64,000 bases of DNA, from contig NW_013657636.1 of assembly GCF_000142905.1 (NCBI RefSeq), positions 62,001 through 126,000 of the forward strand, given 5' to 3'. This document shows, piece by piece, positions 4,611 through 56,000 of this stretch. The notes under the pieces are model-generated. The model was not told the origin of the DNA. It made no database searches and saw only the letters and a program-made list of their open reading frames with translations. A program made the translations under genes and the position numbers. The DNA is from Thecamonas trahens ATCC 50062. Its lineage: Eukaryota > Protista > Apusomonadida. The first letter of the stretch is position 1, and the number at the start of each line of letters is the position of its first letter.

Positions 4611-6291
4611 TCACATGATGGCGCACGAGGACTTGGAAGAGGGCGTGGCGGCTTCGGCCTCGAGCGACTCGACCCGCGACCAGACACCCATCCAGCGGAG
4701 GCACGGCGGATTTGTCTGGGCCCAGACGGCAAACTCGTCCGCGTCAATGACGCCGTCACCATTGGTGTCGACGGTGGCAAAGCACTCGGCGACGTTTGCG
4801 GCGAGCTCGGCGTCGGTGTGGCCGACGGGGGAGATGCCGGACGAGCCCTCAAAGACGGATCGGAGCGACTTAAAGTACGAGAGAAGCTCGTCCGAGTCGA
4901 TGCCGCCGTCATTGTCCTCGTCGAGGACGTCAAAGAGGGCGGCGAGCTTGGCCTCCTGCGAGCCGCCGCAGAGGAGCGATGCGCCGACGACAAACTCGTG
5001 GAACTCAACAGTGCCCGAGCCGTCGCGGTCAAAGAGGCCAAAGAGGCGGTGGAGGGCAGCAGTGGCCTGGTTCCGCTCCTCTTCGGGCAGGCTCGCCGGA
5101 AGCAGCTTGGTCAGCGCCCGCTCAAAGCCGGCCGCGTCGAGGACCATGACCTCGCGGGTCGCACCCGCCGCGGCGGCCGAGCTCGAGGCTCTAGCGGCGG
5201 CAGGCGCGGCATCGGACGCGTTACTCGCGGCCTTGGCAGCCTTGGCCTCGGCCTTGGCGGCCTTGCGGGCAGCCTTGCGGGCGGCGCGCTCTTCGAGGCG
5301 GCGGAGGCGGGCAGCCTTGTGGGCGTCAAACCGCTGGCGCTTCTGCTCTCGGCGCTCACGGATGATTTGGTTCTTGGCCTCGCGCTGCGAGTCGTCCGAC
5401 GCCGAATACGTGAGGTCGGATGAGTCTGTCTCAAACTCCTGGTTCTCGATGCCGGCGTCGGGATCGTTCTCCGACGACGAGTACGACGAGTAGTACGACG
5501 ACGACGACGACGAGTCGACGTTGGCCTTGCCGTTAGAGACCGGAGCAAGCGAGACGCCGGCGCCGGCACCGGCCGCGCCCGCGTCGTCGCTACCGCCGTC
5601 GATTGGGACGCGCTGCTCGCGAAAAGCGGCCTCGTTGCGGAAGACCTCGAGGAGCTCCGAGACCTCGACCTCATCAAAGTGGGTGGCGTGGGCAAGGTCC
5701 TTCACCGACATGACCGCGGCGTACGTCGGCGCGGCCGCCTCGTCAGGGTTGGGCGAGAGCGGGTCCGGCACACGCGGATCGCGCCAAGTCGTCTTCTGGG
5801 TGTTGTGGTCGATGAAGAACGGCTGGCCGTTCTCGTGGATCCGCATCTCCCATCCAGGCGGAAGCGCAGCGCCCGAAGCCGTCTGAATGACTTCCCGATC
5901 ACCAACTACGAGGACCGAGTATGGAGTGCCGGTAAAGATATGAGGCATGCGGGCGAGGAGATGGAGCGGAGAGACCACGCCAGCTTCGGACATGACGCCT
6001 GTGATCTTGACAGACTTTGGAGTGTTTGGCGAGCGAGAGATGATTTTTGGAAAGGCAGCAATGATGGCCTTTCCCAGCAACTCTACCTCTTCTTCGAGCA
6101 TAGCCGGTGCGAGGAGAAAGCTCTTGACCTCTTTCATATGACGAAGACGAACCGTATGAGCTTGAAGCGGCGAGATCATGCCCGGTGTCACCACTCCCTC
6201 GGCCTCCACTGCATTCCCTCCTCCGACAGCAAGTCCTGCAAGTGGTGCAGATGCTGATGCCCCTGCGGTCGTGTTGATCCTCGGGGGTTCC
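4611..6291 (-). CDS. WW domain + EF-hand (NCS/calcineurin B-like) protein; terminal exon, 5' exon(s) probably lost in the gap
   Basis: WW: [32 protein letters not shown] loops [39 protein letters not shown] acceptor at 6294-6292 with CTAAC branch point at ~6330 and a C-rich tract. Ends in CAIM. Confidence 0.85.
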
Positions 6292-6389
6292 CTGAACAGG
6301 CCGGGAGGAGGGGGGGGGGGAGGGGGTTAGTTGTGCGTGTGGGGGAGGGGGGGGAAGGGGGGGGGGAGGGGCGAGGTCGTAGAAAAAGT

Positions 6390-7007
6390 NNNNNNNNNNN
6401 NNNNNNNNNNNNNNNNNNNNNNNNNNNNNNNNNNNNNNNNNNNNNNNNNNNNNNNNNNNNNNNNNNNNNNNNNNNNNNNNNNNNNNNNNNNNNNNNNNNN
6501 NNNNNNNNNNNNNNNNNNNNNNNNNNNNNNNNNNNNNNNNNNNNNNNNNNNNNNNNNNNNNNNNNNNNNNNNNNNNNNNNNNNNNNNNNNNNNNNNNNNN
6601 NNNNNNNNNNNNNNNNNNNNNNNNNNNNNNNNNNNNNNNNNNNNNNNNNNNNNNNNNNNNNNNNNNNNNNNNNNNNNNNNNNNNNNNNNNNNNNNNNNNN
6701 NNNNNNNNNNNNNNNNNNNNNNNNNNNNNNNNNNNNNNNNNNNNNNNNNNNNNNNNNNNNNNNNNNNNNNNNNNNNNNNNNNNNNNNNNNNNNNNNNNNN
6801 NNNNNNNNNNNNNNNNNNNNNNNNNNNNNNNNNNNNNNNNNNNNNNNNNNNNNNNNNNNNNNNNNNNNNNNNNNNNNNNNNNNNNNNNNNNNNNNNNNNN
6901 NNNNNNNNNNNNNNNNNNNNNNNNNNNNNNNNNNNNNNNNNNNNNNNNNNNNNNNNNNNNNNNNNNNNNNNNNNNNNNNNNNNNNNNNNNNNNNNNNNNN
7001 NNNNNNN
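6390..7007. other. Assembly gap
   Basis: N run flanked by G-rich/poly-G sequence. Confidence 1.
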
Positions 7008-7409
7008 GTGGGGGGGGGGGGGTAGTGAGTATGGGTGGGTGTGTACATTGTGGGGGGGAGTGAGGTGGGGTGCTGGGAAGTGGTGGTGGTGGTGGTGGTG
7101 GTGGTGGTGGTAGTGGTGGTCAGAGTGGTACAGGTGGTGGTGGTCGGTGGCGGCGGGCAGTCGGGCAACGGCTGGGATGGACGAGGGGGGGGGGGGGGGA
7201 GGGGATTGGATGGTTGAGAAGGAGGAGGCGATCAGGTACATTCATTGGGTGTTTGGTAGGTGTTGATTGGGCGGGAAGGAAGGCAGATGGCGGTGGCGGT
7301 GGCGTTGGCGGTGGCGTTGGTGTTGGCGGTGATACCGATCGTGGGCTGTAGCAATGATGCGATGATCTTGACGTGGACGGGAGGTGGGTCAGGAACGTAG
7401 AGAGGGAGG

Positions 7410-8153
7410 CTACTTGGTGTCGCGGCCGCAGTCCAAGTGGATGTTGGGAAAGGAAGGCATGGGGAGCTGGGGAAGCGAGAGGTTGCCAAAGCCGGCCGAT
7501 GTGTAGACAGCAGAAAAGCCAGCTCCCTCTTGGTGACCATCGACATACAGACGGACAAGCATGGCCGGGCCTGTCGAAGTAATGCGACCTGGATGCTTGG
7601 AGCCGCACAGTATGGCGAGGAGCGGCGAGTGGATGGTCGGCCCGTCAAAGATCTGGACAAAGTCGCAACATCCGTCTGTAGGCACGCCATCAAACGAGGT
7701 GCACGACGAATCTGAAGGCGCCTTGTCCTCCAGAGACAAAGTACCAAAGTGGAGAGTGATGGGACCAGGCACAGCACCAGGTGCAAGGCCTGCAGCTGCC
7801 GGCTGGATGAGCCAGTCATGAGCGATCCAAGGCTTGAGCTTGGCGGTGCAGCCACCGCCACGCAAGCTTGCACGATCAGCCACGCACGATGCGCACGAGA
7901 CAGAGCAAGCCGAGCACGCGGTACACGACGAGATAGCGCCTGTCATGCTTGTCATGCTTGTCCGTCCATAGCAAGTCAAGCCTTTTGCCCAGAGTGTGAA
8001 GGTGGCCATGACTCCGATGGCCACCACCCAGAGCAGGACATACGAGAGACAGCCTCCGACGTCGACGCCAGACACTCCCAACCCTGTTGCCCCACCAATT
8101 CCTCCCACCCTCACCAGACCACCGCCGTGCCTGACTCCCGCGCCTTCCTCCAT
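7410..8153 (-). CDS. Membrane-anchored CUB-domain protein
   Basis: Hydrophobic segment LSYVLLWVVAIGVMATFTLW, then CUB motifs WLIQ..ITLHF..L.LE, CCDFVQIFDG, LAILCGS..PGRITSTGPAMLVRLYVD..QEGAGFSAVY. Confidence 0.75.
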   Translation of the reverse strand: MEEGAGVRHGGGLVRVGGIGGATGLGVSGVDVGGCLSYVLLWVVAIGVMATFTLWAKGLTCYGRTSMTSMTGAISSCTACSACSVSCASCVADRASLRGGGCTAKLKPWIAHDWLIQPAAAGLAPGAVPGPITLHFGTLSLEDKAPSDSSCTSFDGVPTDGCCDFVQIFDGPTIHSPLLAILCGSKHPGRITSTGPAMLVRLYVDGHQEGAGFSAVYTSAGFGNLSLPQLPMPSFPNIHLDCGRDTK

Positions 8154-12401: not shown

Positions 12402-12466
12402 GAACAGCTGGCGGGCGAACAGTTGGCGAGCGAACAGCTGGCGAGCGAACAGCTGGCGAGTCGAAC
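12402..12466. repeat. 15-bp tandem repeat GAACAGCTGGCGAGC x~4
   Basis: Seen directly; units carry CAGCTG/CAGTTG E-box cores. Confidence 0.85.
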
Positions 12467-12639: not shown

Positions 12640-12912
12640 GGCTGGTGGCTGGCGTCTGGTGGCTGGTGGCTGGCGTCTGGTGGCTGGTGGCTGGTGGCTG
12701 GTGGCTGGTGGCTGGCGGGTGGTGGCTGGTGGCTGGTGGCTGGTGGCTGGTGGCTGGCGGCTGGCGGCTGGCGGCTGGCGGCTGGTGGCTGGTGGCTGGC
12801 GGCTGGCGTCTGGTGGCTGGTGGCTGGTGGTTGGTGGCTGGTGGCTGGTGGCTGGTGGCTGGTGGCTGGCGGCTGGCGGCTGGCGGCTGGCGGCTGGCGG
12901 GTGGTGGCTGGC
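12640..12912. repeat. 7-bp satellite (GG[T/C]GGCT)n, roughly 38 copies
   Basis: Seen directly; ends ~155 bp upstream of the 13069 ATG. Confidence 0.95.
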
Positions 12913-13068: not shown

Positions 13069-13866
13069 ATGAACAAGTTGTTTGAGGGAGAAATTGGATG
13101 GTTTGGGGCGTCTGTTGGTCAAGAGCTTGTCCATAGCTGGCAGGAGCATGGAGGAGAGGTTGTGGCTCATGGAGTGGAAGGAGGAGATGGTGATGGAGAT
13201 GAAGGAGGTGAGGGAGGCCAAATCATTGCTTCCTTCCTCTTCTCTGATGATGCTCATGAACATGCTGTGGCCATTGCTCAGGCTGCGGGTGCTTACGTCA
13301 TTACCTCGGCTTGGATCACAGACGCCATCGCTGCCGCTCGCCGCCCTCCCGTCGGCCACTACATCCTGCCCTCGGCTGATATGGCTGAATACGTCAACTG
13401 TAAGTACTTGCTGGTCTCTCGCCTCTCTCACACATGGTCTTGCCTACACCATCGCCTCAATCTGCCCGCTCTCGCTTGTCCTGCTTCCCCGCCTCTCGTC
13501 ACCATCTCGCACAAGTGCTGATCGCTGTGGCCTCGGGCTGGCTGCCGGCTGACCCCCTCGCGCTAGACCCGGCCAAGACTCGGCCATGACTCGGCCAAGA
13601 ATCGGTTGCAAGCGTAGAACTCTCTCGTCCCCCCCCCCCTCTCCACTCACTCTTCCTCTCCCCGCACAGACCTCAAGGAGCGGGCGTTCAACGAGCCGCG
13701 GCTCATCGCTGCCGCTGATGACGTCGATGAGGTTGTGGGTGAGAGCCACGCAAGGCACAACGCAAGTGTGATGCCCATGGACGGCGTTACCTTCTTCAAT
13801 TTGGATGAGCTTGACCACGACGAAATCCGCATTGCTACCATGTTTGTGGCTCCAGCCAAGTCCTAG
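13069..13866 (+). CDS. TERB2: TERB2-like BRCT-fold protein, 175 aa; exons 13069-13399, 13670-13866
   Basis: LFEGEIGWFGASVGQELVHSWQEHGG...FLFSDDA...VGHYILP matches the recalled TERB2 N-terminus (FQGQRGWFCGSVSQDLRQFWVAEGG...FLFSCDA...LGHFILP). GTAAGT donor at 13400; CAG acceptor at 13669 with CTCAC branch; spliced frame closes at TAG 13866. Confidence 0.7.
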
Positions 13867-13895: not shown

Positions 13896-16118
13896 CTACA
13901 TCAGCCACCGCAGGAGCGCGTCCGCCGGCGGCGCTGTGAGGGACTTGACCCGCTTCGCGGCCGGCGAGCTGGCGAGGAGCGGCTCCGGCGAGCGCCGCCG
14001 GCTCCGCCCCGGATTCTGCCGCCGAGCCGCGCGAATGTCCACCTCCTGCCCGAGATACCCGCGGTCCTCAAGCTCCATCCGCGAGTACCGCGTCGATGGT
14101 GCGTCGTCGTCGCCACTGGGCTCAGCGCCCGTCGGCTCGTTGCCAGCACGCGCTTCCGCAGCAGCCGCAGTCACGCCTGCCGCAGCACTCCCAGCCTCGC
14201 CGGCTGTTCCGCTCTGATCCGGCCGCCGCGCCCGGACAGTCACCTCGGGCGCAAGCTGCATCTGCGCTTCCATCTTGCACATGTACTGCACCAAGGCGTC
14301 AAGACCGGTGCCTGACCCAGCAACCGCCGCGTGCGCTTCCACAAGGTCCCGCACCTCGAGCCACAGTACAGAGTACATCAGCGCCACAGAGTTGTAGTTG
14401 AAACGGTCCGGGAAGAGGTCAAAGTCGTTGCGCGCCCGCGCAGCCGCAAACGTCTCGAGACATTTCAAGCACGCCGCCAGTTCGCCCTGCGCTGGCTCGC
14501 TCACGCTCGTCGCCGCCAGCCGCCCGTTCGCCACCGCATCCACCAGCGGATACAGCATCGTCTTGATCGGCTGGGAGAGCAGCGGATTGAACAGCAACGA
14601 CTCGGTGTCGGTCACCGGAAACACCAATGTCGCCGTGTCGAGCTTGCCCACGGTGCTTGCCCCCGTCATCGGGCCCACAGACGCCGCCGCCACTGCCGCA
14701 TAGTCTTCCGTCGCAAACATCGCCGCAGGATGACTCACGCACCGCGTCGTCTCGTGCAAAATGACAAAGTCCGCGTCGGTGATCGGCCGGAACACATACA
14801 GCAGTAGCGCAGGCCCTGCAAGATCCAGCCGCAGCAGGTGCGTCGGCGGCAGCATCGCCACGTTCGTCGGATACCCGCTCCCGCTCTCTTTGCACATCAC
14901 AAGCATTGCCGCGAGCACCTCGGGCCCGCTCGACTTTTGCACCATCTCGCCTAGCAGCCAGTGCCATGCCTCAGAGCCCACATCCCGCGGCGTGACCCGG
15001 ACCCGCTGCGCCACAGAGAACGCCGCAACATCCACCGCAGCCGTCCGCGGCTTAAACGCAAGCTGCAGCCCGCCGCCAAACGCTCCAGCCGCTGCCAGCT
15101 CCACCCGCGCCCCATCGGGGCAGACAATGTCCACCCGCCCTGCCGATGCCAGGCCCAGCACCGTCTCCGCCATTGCGTCGTGGATGTCTTCAGCGCCACA
15201 CGCCGTCCATCGTGCGTCGACCGCGTCAAGCGTCTTGCGTGCCGGCGCCGCCCACCCGACTGCGCTGTCGACGCTCACAATGCGGAGGCGCAGCTGTCCA
15301 CTGCCCACACTTTGCGGTGCCGACGCCAGCGACGCCAGCACCGCTCCATGGACCTCGCACAGCACATCGTCGGCTGAGTCAGCCGTCAGCGGCCCGCCCA
15401 CCGCCACATACACCACGTCGACCACTGCCGCCGTGGCTAGCACATGATCCAGCGCAGCCTCCATCGGAGACTCGCTCGTCACATGCTTCTGGCGCTGCTC
15501 CTCCTCAGAGCCGGAGCTGTGCACCGTCCCCACCACATGCATGAGCCCAGCCACAATGTCGTCGACCATTTCGGCCACATCAACCACTCCGGCCGGTCCA
15601 CCCGACGACTTGCCCGAGCCTCTGGCCATGCGGTGATCAAACGCCGCCGGAGCTAGGACCGTGCCCCCGTCAGCATTGACACCAGCCACAGCCACAGCCT
15701 CTGGCACCACCGCCTGCAACTCAACCGCCACTCGCACAGCATTGGCCACACTGCTAGCCACAGCCAAGCCCGCAGGCGCCTCTGGCACCACCAGCTCTAC
15801 ATCCATGGGCAGAGGCAACGACAGCGCTGTCGTCGATGTTGTTGATGTCATCGACGTTGCTGATGCCGTCGATGTCATTGATGCTGCTGCTGCGGTCTTC
15901 TTCGTCTTGTTTCTCCTTGTCCTCCCCTTGCCCGTAGTCGCCTCAGCCATGCTGGTCTTCCCCGCCTCTCCAACCACACGGACAACCACCACCAGTCCCG
16001 TCCGCACTGTCGTTGCAGCTGCTGCCGCTGCTCCGCCTTGAGCTCCCTGCTTCCCTTGTGACCTTCCTTCTTCGCCAGCTCCTCCTCGCCTTGCCTCGCC
16101 CGTACTTCCTGTGCTCAT
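13896..16118 (-). CDS. INTS13: Integrator subunit 13 / Asunder-like protein
   Basis: Ordered motifs VRVTPRDVGS, THLL..LLLYV, LDTATLVFPVTDTESLLFN, PLVDAV..ACLKCLETF..RND, MYSVLWLEVRDLVEAH parallel recalled INTS13 motifs (YRISPVDVNS, SHML..IFLHV, LERHTRYWPMIISQTTIFN, PLASVI..NCQKTIYNL..RKND, QYRIMWNELETLVRAH). Start uncertain. Confidence 0.65.
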   Translation of the reverse strand: MSTGSTGEARRGGAGEEGRSQGKQGAQGGAAAAAATTVRTGLVVVVRVVGEAGKTSMAEATTGKGRTRRNKTKKTAAAASMTSTASATSMTSTTSTTALSLPLPMDVELVVPEAPAGLAVASSVANAVRVAVELQAVVPEAVAVAGVNADGGTVLAPAAFDHRMARGSGKSSGGPAGVVDVAEMVDDIVAGLMHVVGTVHSSGSEEEQRQKHVTSESPMEAALDHVLATAAVVDVVYVAVGGPLTADSADDVLCEVHGAVLASLASAPQSVGSGQLRLRIVSVDSAVGWAAPARKTLDAVDARWTACGAEDIHDAMAETVLGLASAGRVDIVCPDGARVELAAAGAFGGGLQLAFKPRTAAVDVAAFSVAQRVRVTPRDVGSEAWHWLLGEMVQKSSGPEVLAAMLVMCKESGSGYPTNVAMLPPTHLLRLDLAGPALLLYVFRPITDADFVILHETTRCVSHPAAMFATEDYAAVAAASVGPMTGASTVGKLDTATLVFPVTDTESLLFNPLLSQPIKTMLYPLVDAVANGRLAATSVSEPAQGELAACLKCLETFAAARARNDFDLFPDRFNYNSVALMYSVLWLEVRDLVEAHAAVAGSGTGLDALVQYMCKMEAQMQLAPEVTVRARRPDQSGTAGEAGSAAAGVTAAAAEARAGNEPTGAEPSGDDDAPSTRYSRMELEDRGYLGQEVDIRAARRQNPGRSRRRSPEPLLASSPAAKRVKSLTAPPADALLRWLM

Positions 16119-16317
16119 GCTTGCACTGCCGAGTCGAGTCGTCCTCACTCTCTCCCTCTCCCTCTCCCTCTCTCTCTCTGTCACTTTGCTACCGTCACCG
16201 GCTGGCGGCACTCGTCACTCGGCTGTCACCTCGCCACGGGGGGGGGGGGGGGGGGGGGGAAGTGGAGGGGAAAAAATTGTTGCCAGCTGGGCGTTTCTCT
16301 CGACTCGCTTGCGACTT

Positions 16318-53636: not shown

Positions 53637-54400
53637 NNNNNNNNNNNNNNNNNNNNNNNNNNNNNNNNNNNNNNNNNNNNNNNNNNNNNNNNNNNNNNNN
53701 NNNNNNNNNNNNNNNNNNNNNNNNNNNNNNNNNNNNNNNNNNNNNNNNNNNNNNNNNNNNNNNNNNNNNNNNNNNNNNNNNNNNNNNNNNNNNNNNNNNN
53801 NNNNNNNNNNNNNNNNNNNNNNNNNNNNNNNNNNNNNNNNNNNNNNNNNNNNNNNNNNNNNNNNNNNNNNNNNNNNNNNNNNNNNNNNNNNNNNNNNNNN
53901 NNNNNNNNNNNNNNNNNNNNNNNNNNNNNNNNNNNNNNNNNNNNNNNNNNNNNNNNNNNNNNNNNNNNNNNNNNNNNNNNNNNNNNNNNNNNNNNNNNNN
54001 NNNNNNNNNNNNNNNNNNNNNNNNNNNNNNNNNNNNNNNNNNNNNNNNNNNNNNNNNNNNNNNNNNNNNNNNNNNNNNNNNNNNNNNNNNNNNNNNNNNN
54101 NNNNNNNNNNNNNNNNNNNNNNNNNNNNNNNNNNNNNNNNNNNNNNNNNNNNNNNNNNNNNNNNNNNNNNNNNNNNNNNNNNNNNNNNNNNNNNNNNNNN
54201 NNNNNNNNNNNNNNNNNNNNNNNNNNNNNNNNNNNNNNNNNNNNNNNNNNNNNNNNNNNNNNNNNNNNNNNNNNNNNNNNNNNNNNNNNNNNNNNNNNNN
54301 NNNNNNNNNNNNNNNNNNNNNNNNNNNNNNNNNNNNNNNNNNNNNNNNNNNNNNNNNNNNNNNNNNNNNNNNNNNNNNNNNNNNNNNNNNNNNNNNNNNN
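53637..54400. other. Assembly gap
   Basis: N run flanked by G-rich/poly-G sequence. Confidence 1.
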
Positions 54401-56000
54401 CGGGGGGGGGGGGGGACCCTTTTTTCCATGGCCAGCCCGCAAACCGGCATCGAACACACCGTGGCTGCTCCCGCCCCAGCCCCCTGCCCCAGCCCCAGCC
54501 CACAGCACAAGTCGTTCTGCCCACCTCTTAACACACCCAAACATATTATGAGCGCCGGAGACTGACTCGCGCCCTCTCCACGCCCTCTTCTCTGTCGTCG
54601 TAGCTGGGACGGGAGGCCTGGCCAACTGCTTTAGTCGAACTGCCGAGCCGCCGCCGCCGTTGTACTGCTCTACACCCTCCTCACCCCGCCGCAGCCCATC
54701 CTCAGCCACCCCCAGCCCGCCCGCAGTAGGGCATGCACTTGTGGCACATCCGTTGTGCGCGTGGTATGGCTCTCTCTGCTTATTCCGCCTGCTACCCATG
54801 ATTGGACTCATCAAGCTATGGCGGCAACGGACCGGACAACGCCCGGCACTCGGCCACAAGCGCCAGCCTCCAGCCACCACCAGCGCCGCCAAGGTCAGAT
54901 CGGTCGGTGGGGTCATCTCGACCCGACCGACTACTCGGACAGCATCATGCTGAAGAACGAGGTGGGGACAGGCACGGACGGGTTAGACATCGATCGGATG
55001 GTGATGCCCATCATGGTCGTCGTCGGTGCCTCCAGCACCTCCCAGCCATCTTCGAGCTAGACATGGCGATGGTCATGATGATGGTCGTGAGGACCGCGTC
55101 GCAGTCGCTGACCGGAGAGTGGCGTCCGTGTCCACACTCAACTCTATTCGAGCATGGTATGTTGGTTGATGATCATGATCATCATGGTGGTGATGGTGGC
55201 CCTGGTCGACAAGTGGTCGACCGAGGTGGGCGGGTGTTGGTCAATCCGATGTCGCGCCCGATCCGTCAATCGACGCCATTAGTCAACACTGCCGACTCCC
55301 TCAACTTGATCGATCCGAGGTGTGGTCATTAGGTCATCGATGATGTCCGCTGCTCTCACCCCCCCTTCCTCGCTCACCGCCATGGTCCACCTATGCAGAT
55401 GAAGACAACCTCCGGCGAGCTCACCACCACCATCGCTAACACGACTGGCCAAGCCCGGGATTCGATGCCGCCGTCCACACTCACTTTTGCAGGCTTCAAG
55501 CGCCGCCGCGACGACGACGCCTCCAAGTTCGCGCCGCCCCCAAGCGCCAGGCAACACTTTCAACAGTCACCTCGGTCAGTCTAGCCTTCCTCATCCGCGA
55601 TAAGTTCCTTCCCAGCAATGTGCGCCCCGGCGAGGGCGACAACCCTCTCTACGACACCATCCAGATCCCAGCCGCCGCCCCGCCGTCGTCTGATTTCGCA
55701 AACCACGACAACAGCGCTTGATGTTGGCCATGGCCGTGGCAACCGTATGAGCTCTGCTTCAACGACACGCATCAGTGAACGATAGCGTCCGACGATAATG
55801 AAAATGATGACAAGCAGCCTCTCCCGGCAATTCAGCCCATGTAACCACACGCCTCCCCACCCCGCCCCATTGCCAGTGTGCTCATTGTCAATGACATCGC
55901 TGACGTCGATCTATCCCGCCATGCTCCAGCAGGTGTTGGAGTGGACGGGGCAGAACGGGCGAGTAGACGGAATTGATCGTCAGCCTCTGGCATCGAAACA

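Follow-up and report, generated by a model that had tools for sequence, protein, structure and literature searches.

The locus at positions 13069 to 13866 of the window (the whole stretch of 64,000 nucleotides of Thecamonas trahens ATCC 50062 analyzed here, bases 62001–126000 of contig 44) raises the question whether a relative of the animal protein TERB2 is encoded in an organism that is not an animal. Thecamonas is an apusomonad and belongs to a lineage that is sister to the opisthokonts. TERB1-TERB2-MAJIN has been described as a metazoan invention (PMC7227075); an exhaustive PSI-BLAST search of NCBI nr recovered TERB1, TERB2 and MAJIN only in Metazoa and found nothing in fungi and the unicellular relatives of animals (da Cruz et al. 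2020, PMC7227075), and a review from 2026 calls the complex 'conserved in most metazoan' (PMC13522668). A non-opisthokont protein that passes a curated TERB2 model is the first handle on the origin of TERB2.

The locus was first considered as a gene. It comprises two frame-compatible exons on the forward strand, 13069–13399 and 13670–13866, encoding 175 aa. An in-frame stop (TAG, 13051) lies upstream, and the ATG at 13069 is the first one after it. Codon 111 is split by the intron: exon 1, with 110 full codons and one base of codon 111, encodes the entire globular N-terminal domain, and exon 2 starts with the other two bases, which are followed by 64 codons and the stop codon TAG (13864–13866). 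The phases of both exons (1 + 2) join in frame, and the frame of exon 2 is open from 13618 onwards. The predicted intron (13400–13669, forward strand, 270 nt, phase 1) begins with GTAAGT, ends with a pyrimidine tract followed by CACAG and contains an 11-bp tandem repeat at 13565–13605. Position 13400 is the sole GTAAGT donor of the stretch concerned, and 13668–13669 is the sole AG behind a pyrimidine tract. In the whole window GTAAGT was found four times versus 5.4 expected occurrences, i.e. it is not enriched; consequently, the donor motif alone is weak evidence and the splice model is carried by the phase match and the pyrimidine tract. Start, donor, acceptor, phases and stop thus all check out in the sequence for the two-exon gene of 175 aa that the initial annotation had proposed.

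The base composition of the two exons differs. The GC3 value is 0.48 for exon 1 (13069–13398) and 0.70 for exon 2, the latter being typical of coding sequence in the window, where the long open frames (≥300 aa, n = 55) have values of 0.59–0.85 in 47 cases; the remaining eight, with GC3 values of 0.12–0.39, look non-coding. For the low value of exon 1, low expression, fast evolution or a recent origin are each conceivable. The GC content of the window itself dips at 6001–8000 (0.42) and at 54001–56000 (0.49), compared to 0.60–0.68 elsewhere. ORFs that overlap the locus on the antisense strand or in other frames gave no family match.

Pieces of the gene were found in only one RNA library, an environmental one labelled as a subsurface metagenome metatranscriptome. 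Two contigs of 151 nt from this public run, both 100% identical to the genome, lie inside exon 1 (13164–13314) and inside exon 2 (13689–13839), respectively; none of the pieces lies on the intron or across the 13399/13670 junction, so that the library lends weak support to the gene model. A 100% match of a subsurface-labelled library to a cultured flagellate indicates either that the organism or its nucleic acid was in the sample or that the label is misleading.

The gene had no self-match among 1.84 billion protein representatives, a collection that includes the public Thecamonas proteome, as is evident from the presence of AMSG_04107, and it is consequently unannotated. Ten neighbouring ORFs were also looked up as exact sequences in the protein collection and none of them was found, which is attributable to gene-model differences because AMSG_04107 is in the database. 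The lack of an annotation explains why database surveys such as the PSI-BLAST search on NCBI nr (da Cruz et al. 2020) could not see the gene. Judged by its sequence features, the locus holds a genuine two-exon gene, as yet unannotated, with a putative splice. As to its surroundings, a tandem array of the 7-bp unit GGCTGGT (12640–12911, ~39 copies, 90% matches) lies ~160 bp 5' of the ATG, and a 15-bp tandem array is located further upstream at 12402–12466. Downstream, a convergent open frame of 771 aa on the reverse strand (13896–16211) gave no Pfam match at E ≤ 10; its stop is 29 bp away from that of the TERB2-like gene, so that the 3' ends of the two must overlap or abut.

In order to assign the product, searches were run exon by exon or on open frames, with a Pfam scan covering 24,736 families. 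Exon 1 (110 aa) matched the Pfam family TERB2 (PF15101) with 29.8 bits (E 7.1e-7) and thereby passed the curated gathering threshold of 27 bits. The unspliced ORF reached 28.7 bits, and the sum obtained in the six-frame scan of the 28.7-Mb genome, in which this locus was the sole TERB2 match, was 28.9 bits. The margin above the cut-off amounts to 2.8 bits, and more than half of the score originates from 29 residues. The match is colinear, residues 5–33 corresponding to profile positions 1–29 and residues 54–109 to positions 33–96 of a model with 207 positions; together both pieces cover the whole N-terminal (TERB1-binding) domain, which is broken by a Gly/Asp/Glu insert. The TERB2-like N-terminal domain proposed for this gene is thus borne out by a score above the cut-off and beyond chance.

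Relatives of the protein were sought in several collections. Among 5.8 billion clustered proteins none was found, neither at E ≤ 0.01 nor at E ≤ 10; phmmer against the 1.84 billion representatives returned a spurious repeat protein (P0001) as the only match, and no relatives were found in JGI metagenome contigs. As no relatives were found, these collections give no measure of conservation. These findings bear on the view that the locus is no gene at all, the open frame being a product of chance in GC-rich DNA and its likeness to TERB2 accidental. The genome has a GC content of 64% and long spurious ORFs are common in it, the GC3 value of exon 1 is atypically low, and absence from the public gene set and the lack of relatives found fit this view as well. 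On the other hand, the PF15101 match reaches significance at the level of one protein and, by an extrapolated summed score that is an estimate, also genome-wide; the profile starts at residue 5, right behind the first ATG after the in-frame stop; the splice signals, canonical and matching in phase, are followed by an open frame of high GC3; and the RNA-library pieces fall on both exons only. With respect to these points we regard a chance frame as highly implausible.

The motifs GWFGASVGQEL..W..HGG, FLFSDDA and GHYILP, on which the TERB2 assignment was initially founded, are all present and in that order. The most TERB2-specific segment comprises residues 5–33 (13081–13167, forward strand; GWF..SV.QEL...W...GG), which contributed 17.1 bits to PF15101 in the genome scan and was aligned by phmmer to residues 1–26 of 6J07 chain A. 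When the first 39 residues were scanned alone, TERB2 ranked first of the 24,736 families with 21.6 bits (E 2.4e-4). The following Gly/Asp/Glu-rich insert (residues 35–50, 13171–13218, forward strand) is placed between strands 2 and 3 in the BRCT alignment and has pLDDT values below 50 in both models discussed below. The remainder of the domain (residues 54–109, 13228–13395, forward strand) runs from FLFSDDA through a helix, a strand and a Trp-containing helix to GHYILP; it scored 10.6–13.5 bits with PF15101 and also matches the C-terminal half of BRCT domains. Scanned alone against the 24,736 families, this C-terminal half again ranked TERB2 first (13.5 bits, E 0.07). When the whole domain was compared by sequence with solved structures, 6J07 chain A of human TERB2 came first with E 0.016, followed by the BRCT of BRCA1 (E ~1).

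The match is not free of differences. The second piece aligns 56 residues with 64 profile positions, which corresponds to a net deletion of ~8 residues, so that the domain does not deviate from TERB2 by a Gly/acidic insertion only, as had been assumed at first. Short fragments were scanned against Pfam to place the deletion and gave no matches. Placed by the human TERB2 sequence, the deletion probably removes the segment with the TERB1 contacts Asp55/Tyr56/Glu58/Asp59, in a numbering that agrees with both Wang et al. 2019 and da Cruz et al. 2020. These four are the TERB1-contact residues of human TERB2, whose N-domain in the structure with a TERB1 peptide (6J07) consists of a three-stranded sheet and six helices (Wang et al. 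2019, PMC6361898). For all TERB2 proteins a motif [F/Y]xLxP has been reported where the N-domain ends (da Cruz et al. 2020, PMC7227075); the Thecamonas sequence, G-H-Y-I-L-P-S, departs from it, with Tyr and Leu fitting and Pro standing one place early.

The domain resembles BRCT domains, too, and an ordinary, fast-evolving stand-alone BRCT protein has to be weighed as an alternative. The N-terminal likeness to TERB2 would then be a convergence on a strand-helix-GG pattern, and the protein would have a task typical of single BRCT domains, for example the docking of proteins or phosphopeptides in pathways of chromatin or DNA damage. Several results point in this direction. When the C-terminal half was compared alone with the PDB, the best match was the BRCT of BRCA1 (E 0.09) and human TERB2 was absent. 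A profile built from 20 BRCT domains of the Thecamonas genome was aligned by hhalign to residues 64–100 with a probability of 78.5% and E 1.7e-5 over 37 columns. The multiple alignment with these domains is colinear: the GG turn that follows helix 1, the A..G that precedes strand 4, the Trp of helix 3 and the terminal Tyr are all in place. In a language-model atlas, which provides leads only, BRCT clusters (0.87 and 0.86) stood just above a TERB2 cluster (0.85); with the BRCT families left out, TERB2 clusters took ranks 1 and 3, again as leads only. A single-sequence AF2 model had a pLDDT of 47, which renders its structural matches meaningless. A model seeded with BRCT paralogues and therefore biased to BRCT reached a pLDDT of 67 (82–91 for residues 54–109) and, with this bias, matched only BRCT folds; 6J07 was not among the best 50 structure matches in either search with it. 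The lack of TERB2 partners in the genome searches described below likewise fits an ordinary BRCT protein.

The Pfam scores speak against it. BRCT_2, the best of the BRCT families, gave 12.2 bits (E 0.24) for exon 1 where 27.3 bits are needed, whereas TERB2 passes its own threshold; on exon 1 the TERB2 model thus prevails over generic BRCT models with 29.8 versus 12.2 bits. The locus was also absent from the genome-wide match lists of BRCT and BRCT_2. As a specificity control, 20 canonical BRCT domains cut from the Thecamonas genome were scanned against Pfam: all of them matched BRCT families and none matched TERB2 at any reported E-value. Consequently, the TERB2 model is not merely detecting BRCT-ness. 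Furthermore, both halves of the domain separately rank TERB2 first of all families. Taken together, we consider an ordinary BRCT protein the less probable account, albeit one that deserves serious consideration. Judging by the alignments, the C-terminal half resembles BRCT domains and TERB2 to the same degree, and we read the exon 1 product as a putative BRCT-superfamily domain that, among the known families, stands nearest to the TERB2 N-domain. The initial proposal is partly supported in that the likeness to the TERB2 N-domain appears real and specific; a function in a tether is only putative. A possibility that follows the same line is that the TERB2 N-domain may itself be BRCT-derived; TERB2 and BRCT were not found mentioned together in the literature searched.

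The tail was considered separately. Exon 2 contributes 65 aa with a hydrophobic stretch VTFFNLDEL...IRIATMFVAP. In this tail, MPMDGVTFFNLDEL had been taken as a weak likeness to the MAJIN-binding segment of TERB2; the motif is present and finds no support from Pfam or the PDB. Neither exon 2 alone nor the whole open frame 13618–13863 matched a Pfam family at E ≤ 10, no relevant match was obtained for exon 2 in the PDB, and the C-terminal MAJIN-binding motif (human residues 168–202) was not recognisable in exon 2 by the TERB2 profile.

With a globular N-domain, a linker and a hydrophobic C-terminal segment the protein has a TERB2-like layout, from which a small adaptor appears most likely. The protein of 175 aa would be non-enzymatic, its first ~105 residues forming the BRCT-superfamily/TERB2-N-like domain and its last ~65 the tail. 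In such an adaptor the globular domain may dock one partner through that partner's helical or peptide motif, while the hydrophobic C-terminal tail would hold a second partner. We infer that the domain shares its descent with the N-domain of TERB2 and that the protein acts as an adaptor, and, judged on the sequence comparisons, homology to the TERB2 N-domain and the small-adaptor reading would jointly have somewhat better than even prospects of being correct.

As TERB2 acts together with TERB1 and MAJIN, the genome was searched for partners. A six-frame scan for MAJIN (PF15077) gave no match at E ≤ 10, although a divergent or intron-split gene could escape such a scan and no control genome has the family. 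TERB1 was looked for through Myb matches rather than via a TERB1 profile, and no candidate with ARM and Myb was present among the 33 Myb matches of the genome. The only telobox protein among these 33 is the TRF-type telomere protein AMSG_04107 (600 aa as annotated; contig 16, about 500875–502716, forward strand; L068:1376–3217), whose telobox Myb is C-terminal, with no Cys/His zinc motif upstream of it; the product of the locus is 100% identical to AMSG_04107. The best matches of its Myb were zebrafish Terfa and human TRF2/TRF1 (E about 1e-13), with the Myb of mouse TERB1 far behind. The N-terminal helical region of AMSG_04107 (~220 aa) matched no Pfam family, and a search of the genome for the TRFH family of Pfam gave no match. 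A Rap1-like gene on contig 51 (reverse strand, L069:1495–3186) matched Myb_Rap1 with 19 bits and Rap1_C with 23.9–27.7 bits. By these matches Thecamonas possesses shelterin-type TRF and Rap1 components. Rap1 had also been considered as an identity for the TERB2-like protein and was rejected because this separate Rap1-like gene exists. Three Spo11/TP6A_N matches, Hop2, Mnd1 and two SUN-domain genes were located on contigs 45, 26, 46, 12, 27, 78 and 20 (L031–L037). The structures that a tether would connect (TRF, Rap1, SUN) are thus present independently of the TERB2-like gene. Of the partners expected along with the TERB2-like gene, the search delivered a TRF-type gene and neither a MAJIN match nor a TERB1 candidate among the 33 Myb matches.

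These results bear on the most far-reaching reading, in which the protein is a true functional TERB2 orthologue acting in an ancestral TERB1-TERB2-MAJIN-like tether during an unobserved meiosis of Thecamonas. The membership of the N-domain in the TERB2 family, the TERB2-like overall layout and size, and the presence of TRF-type, Rap1-like, two SUN-domain, Spo11, Hop2 and Mnd1 genes are consistent with it. Moreover, Thecamonas reportedly keeps other 'animal-only' machinery, for example the integrin adhesome (Sebe-Pedros et al. 2010). Against this reading, the MAJIN-binding motif, MAJIN and a TERB1 candidate were all not found, and the 8-residue deletion probably lies where the TERB1 contacts of the human protein sit. 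The reading would furthermore demand that fungi and every unicellular relative of animals have lost the protein or changed it past recognition, as the PSI-BLAST search recovered nothing there (PMC7227075). A functional orthologue therefore seems quite improbable to us, and the ancestral TERB/MAJIN-like system put forward in the initial annotation does not follow from the likeness of the N-domain. A role of the Thecamonas protein in a telomere-nuclear envelope tether in general is possible, if unsupported, and would have to be called rather unlikely. For the hint at cryptic meiosis nothing is gained from the TERB2-like gene: Spo11, Hop2 and Mnd1 are present independently, so that the meiotic capacity of Thecamonas does not rest on it.

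With common descent and a small adaptor as the preferred reading, the history of TERB2 may be considered. That TERB2 predates the animals, with the Thecamonas protein as an early form that has survived and kept its BRCT-like appearance, is a doubtful proposition at present. If it were correct, the TERB1-binding domain of TERB2 would be shown to descend from a BRCT domain, and a TERB2-based adaptor would have linked shelterin-type proteins (TRF, Rap1) to the nuclear envelope in the ancestor of apusomonads and opisthokonts, with partners that were different or have diverged beyond recognition. The analysis suggests a checkable idea in this respect, namely that the N-domain of TERB2 is a modified BRCT domain. 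If the link were superficial, the result would be a minor finding, an orphan BRCT-like gene.

The protein may finally be compared with known systems. Bqt1/Bqt2 of fission yeast and Ndj1 of budding yeast are not known to be related in sequence to the TERB2-like protein and are functional analogues only; yeast and animal adaptors for meiotic telomeres are not known to share detectable sequence. In our comparison no sequence relationship of Bqt1/Bqt2 or Ndj1 with the Thecamonas protein was seen either; they are alike only in the proposed role, as small adaptors between shelterin-type and SUN-domain proteins. Compared to BRCT domains (clan with PF00533, PF16589, PF12738), such as the second one in BRCA1 or the N-terminal one in Rap1, the Thecamonas protein stays under every BRCT threshold of Pfam and its domain is a stand-alone single one, Rap1 being a separate gene in this organism. 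Unlike animal TERB2, the Thecamonas protein carries a 16-residue Gly/acidic insert and a net deletion of 8 residues, keeps the BRCT-type Trp, has YxLPS in place of [F/Y]xLxP and an unrecognisable MAJIN-binding motif, and comes from a genome in which no MAJIN or TERB1 was found. In common with TERB2 (PF15101) it has the GWF..SV.Q[DE]L...W...GG start, FLFS.DA and GH[FY]ILP, and both are similar in size (175 aa versus ~220 aa) and in their layout of a globular N-domain followed by a short hydrophobic C-terminal segment.
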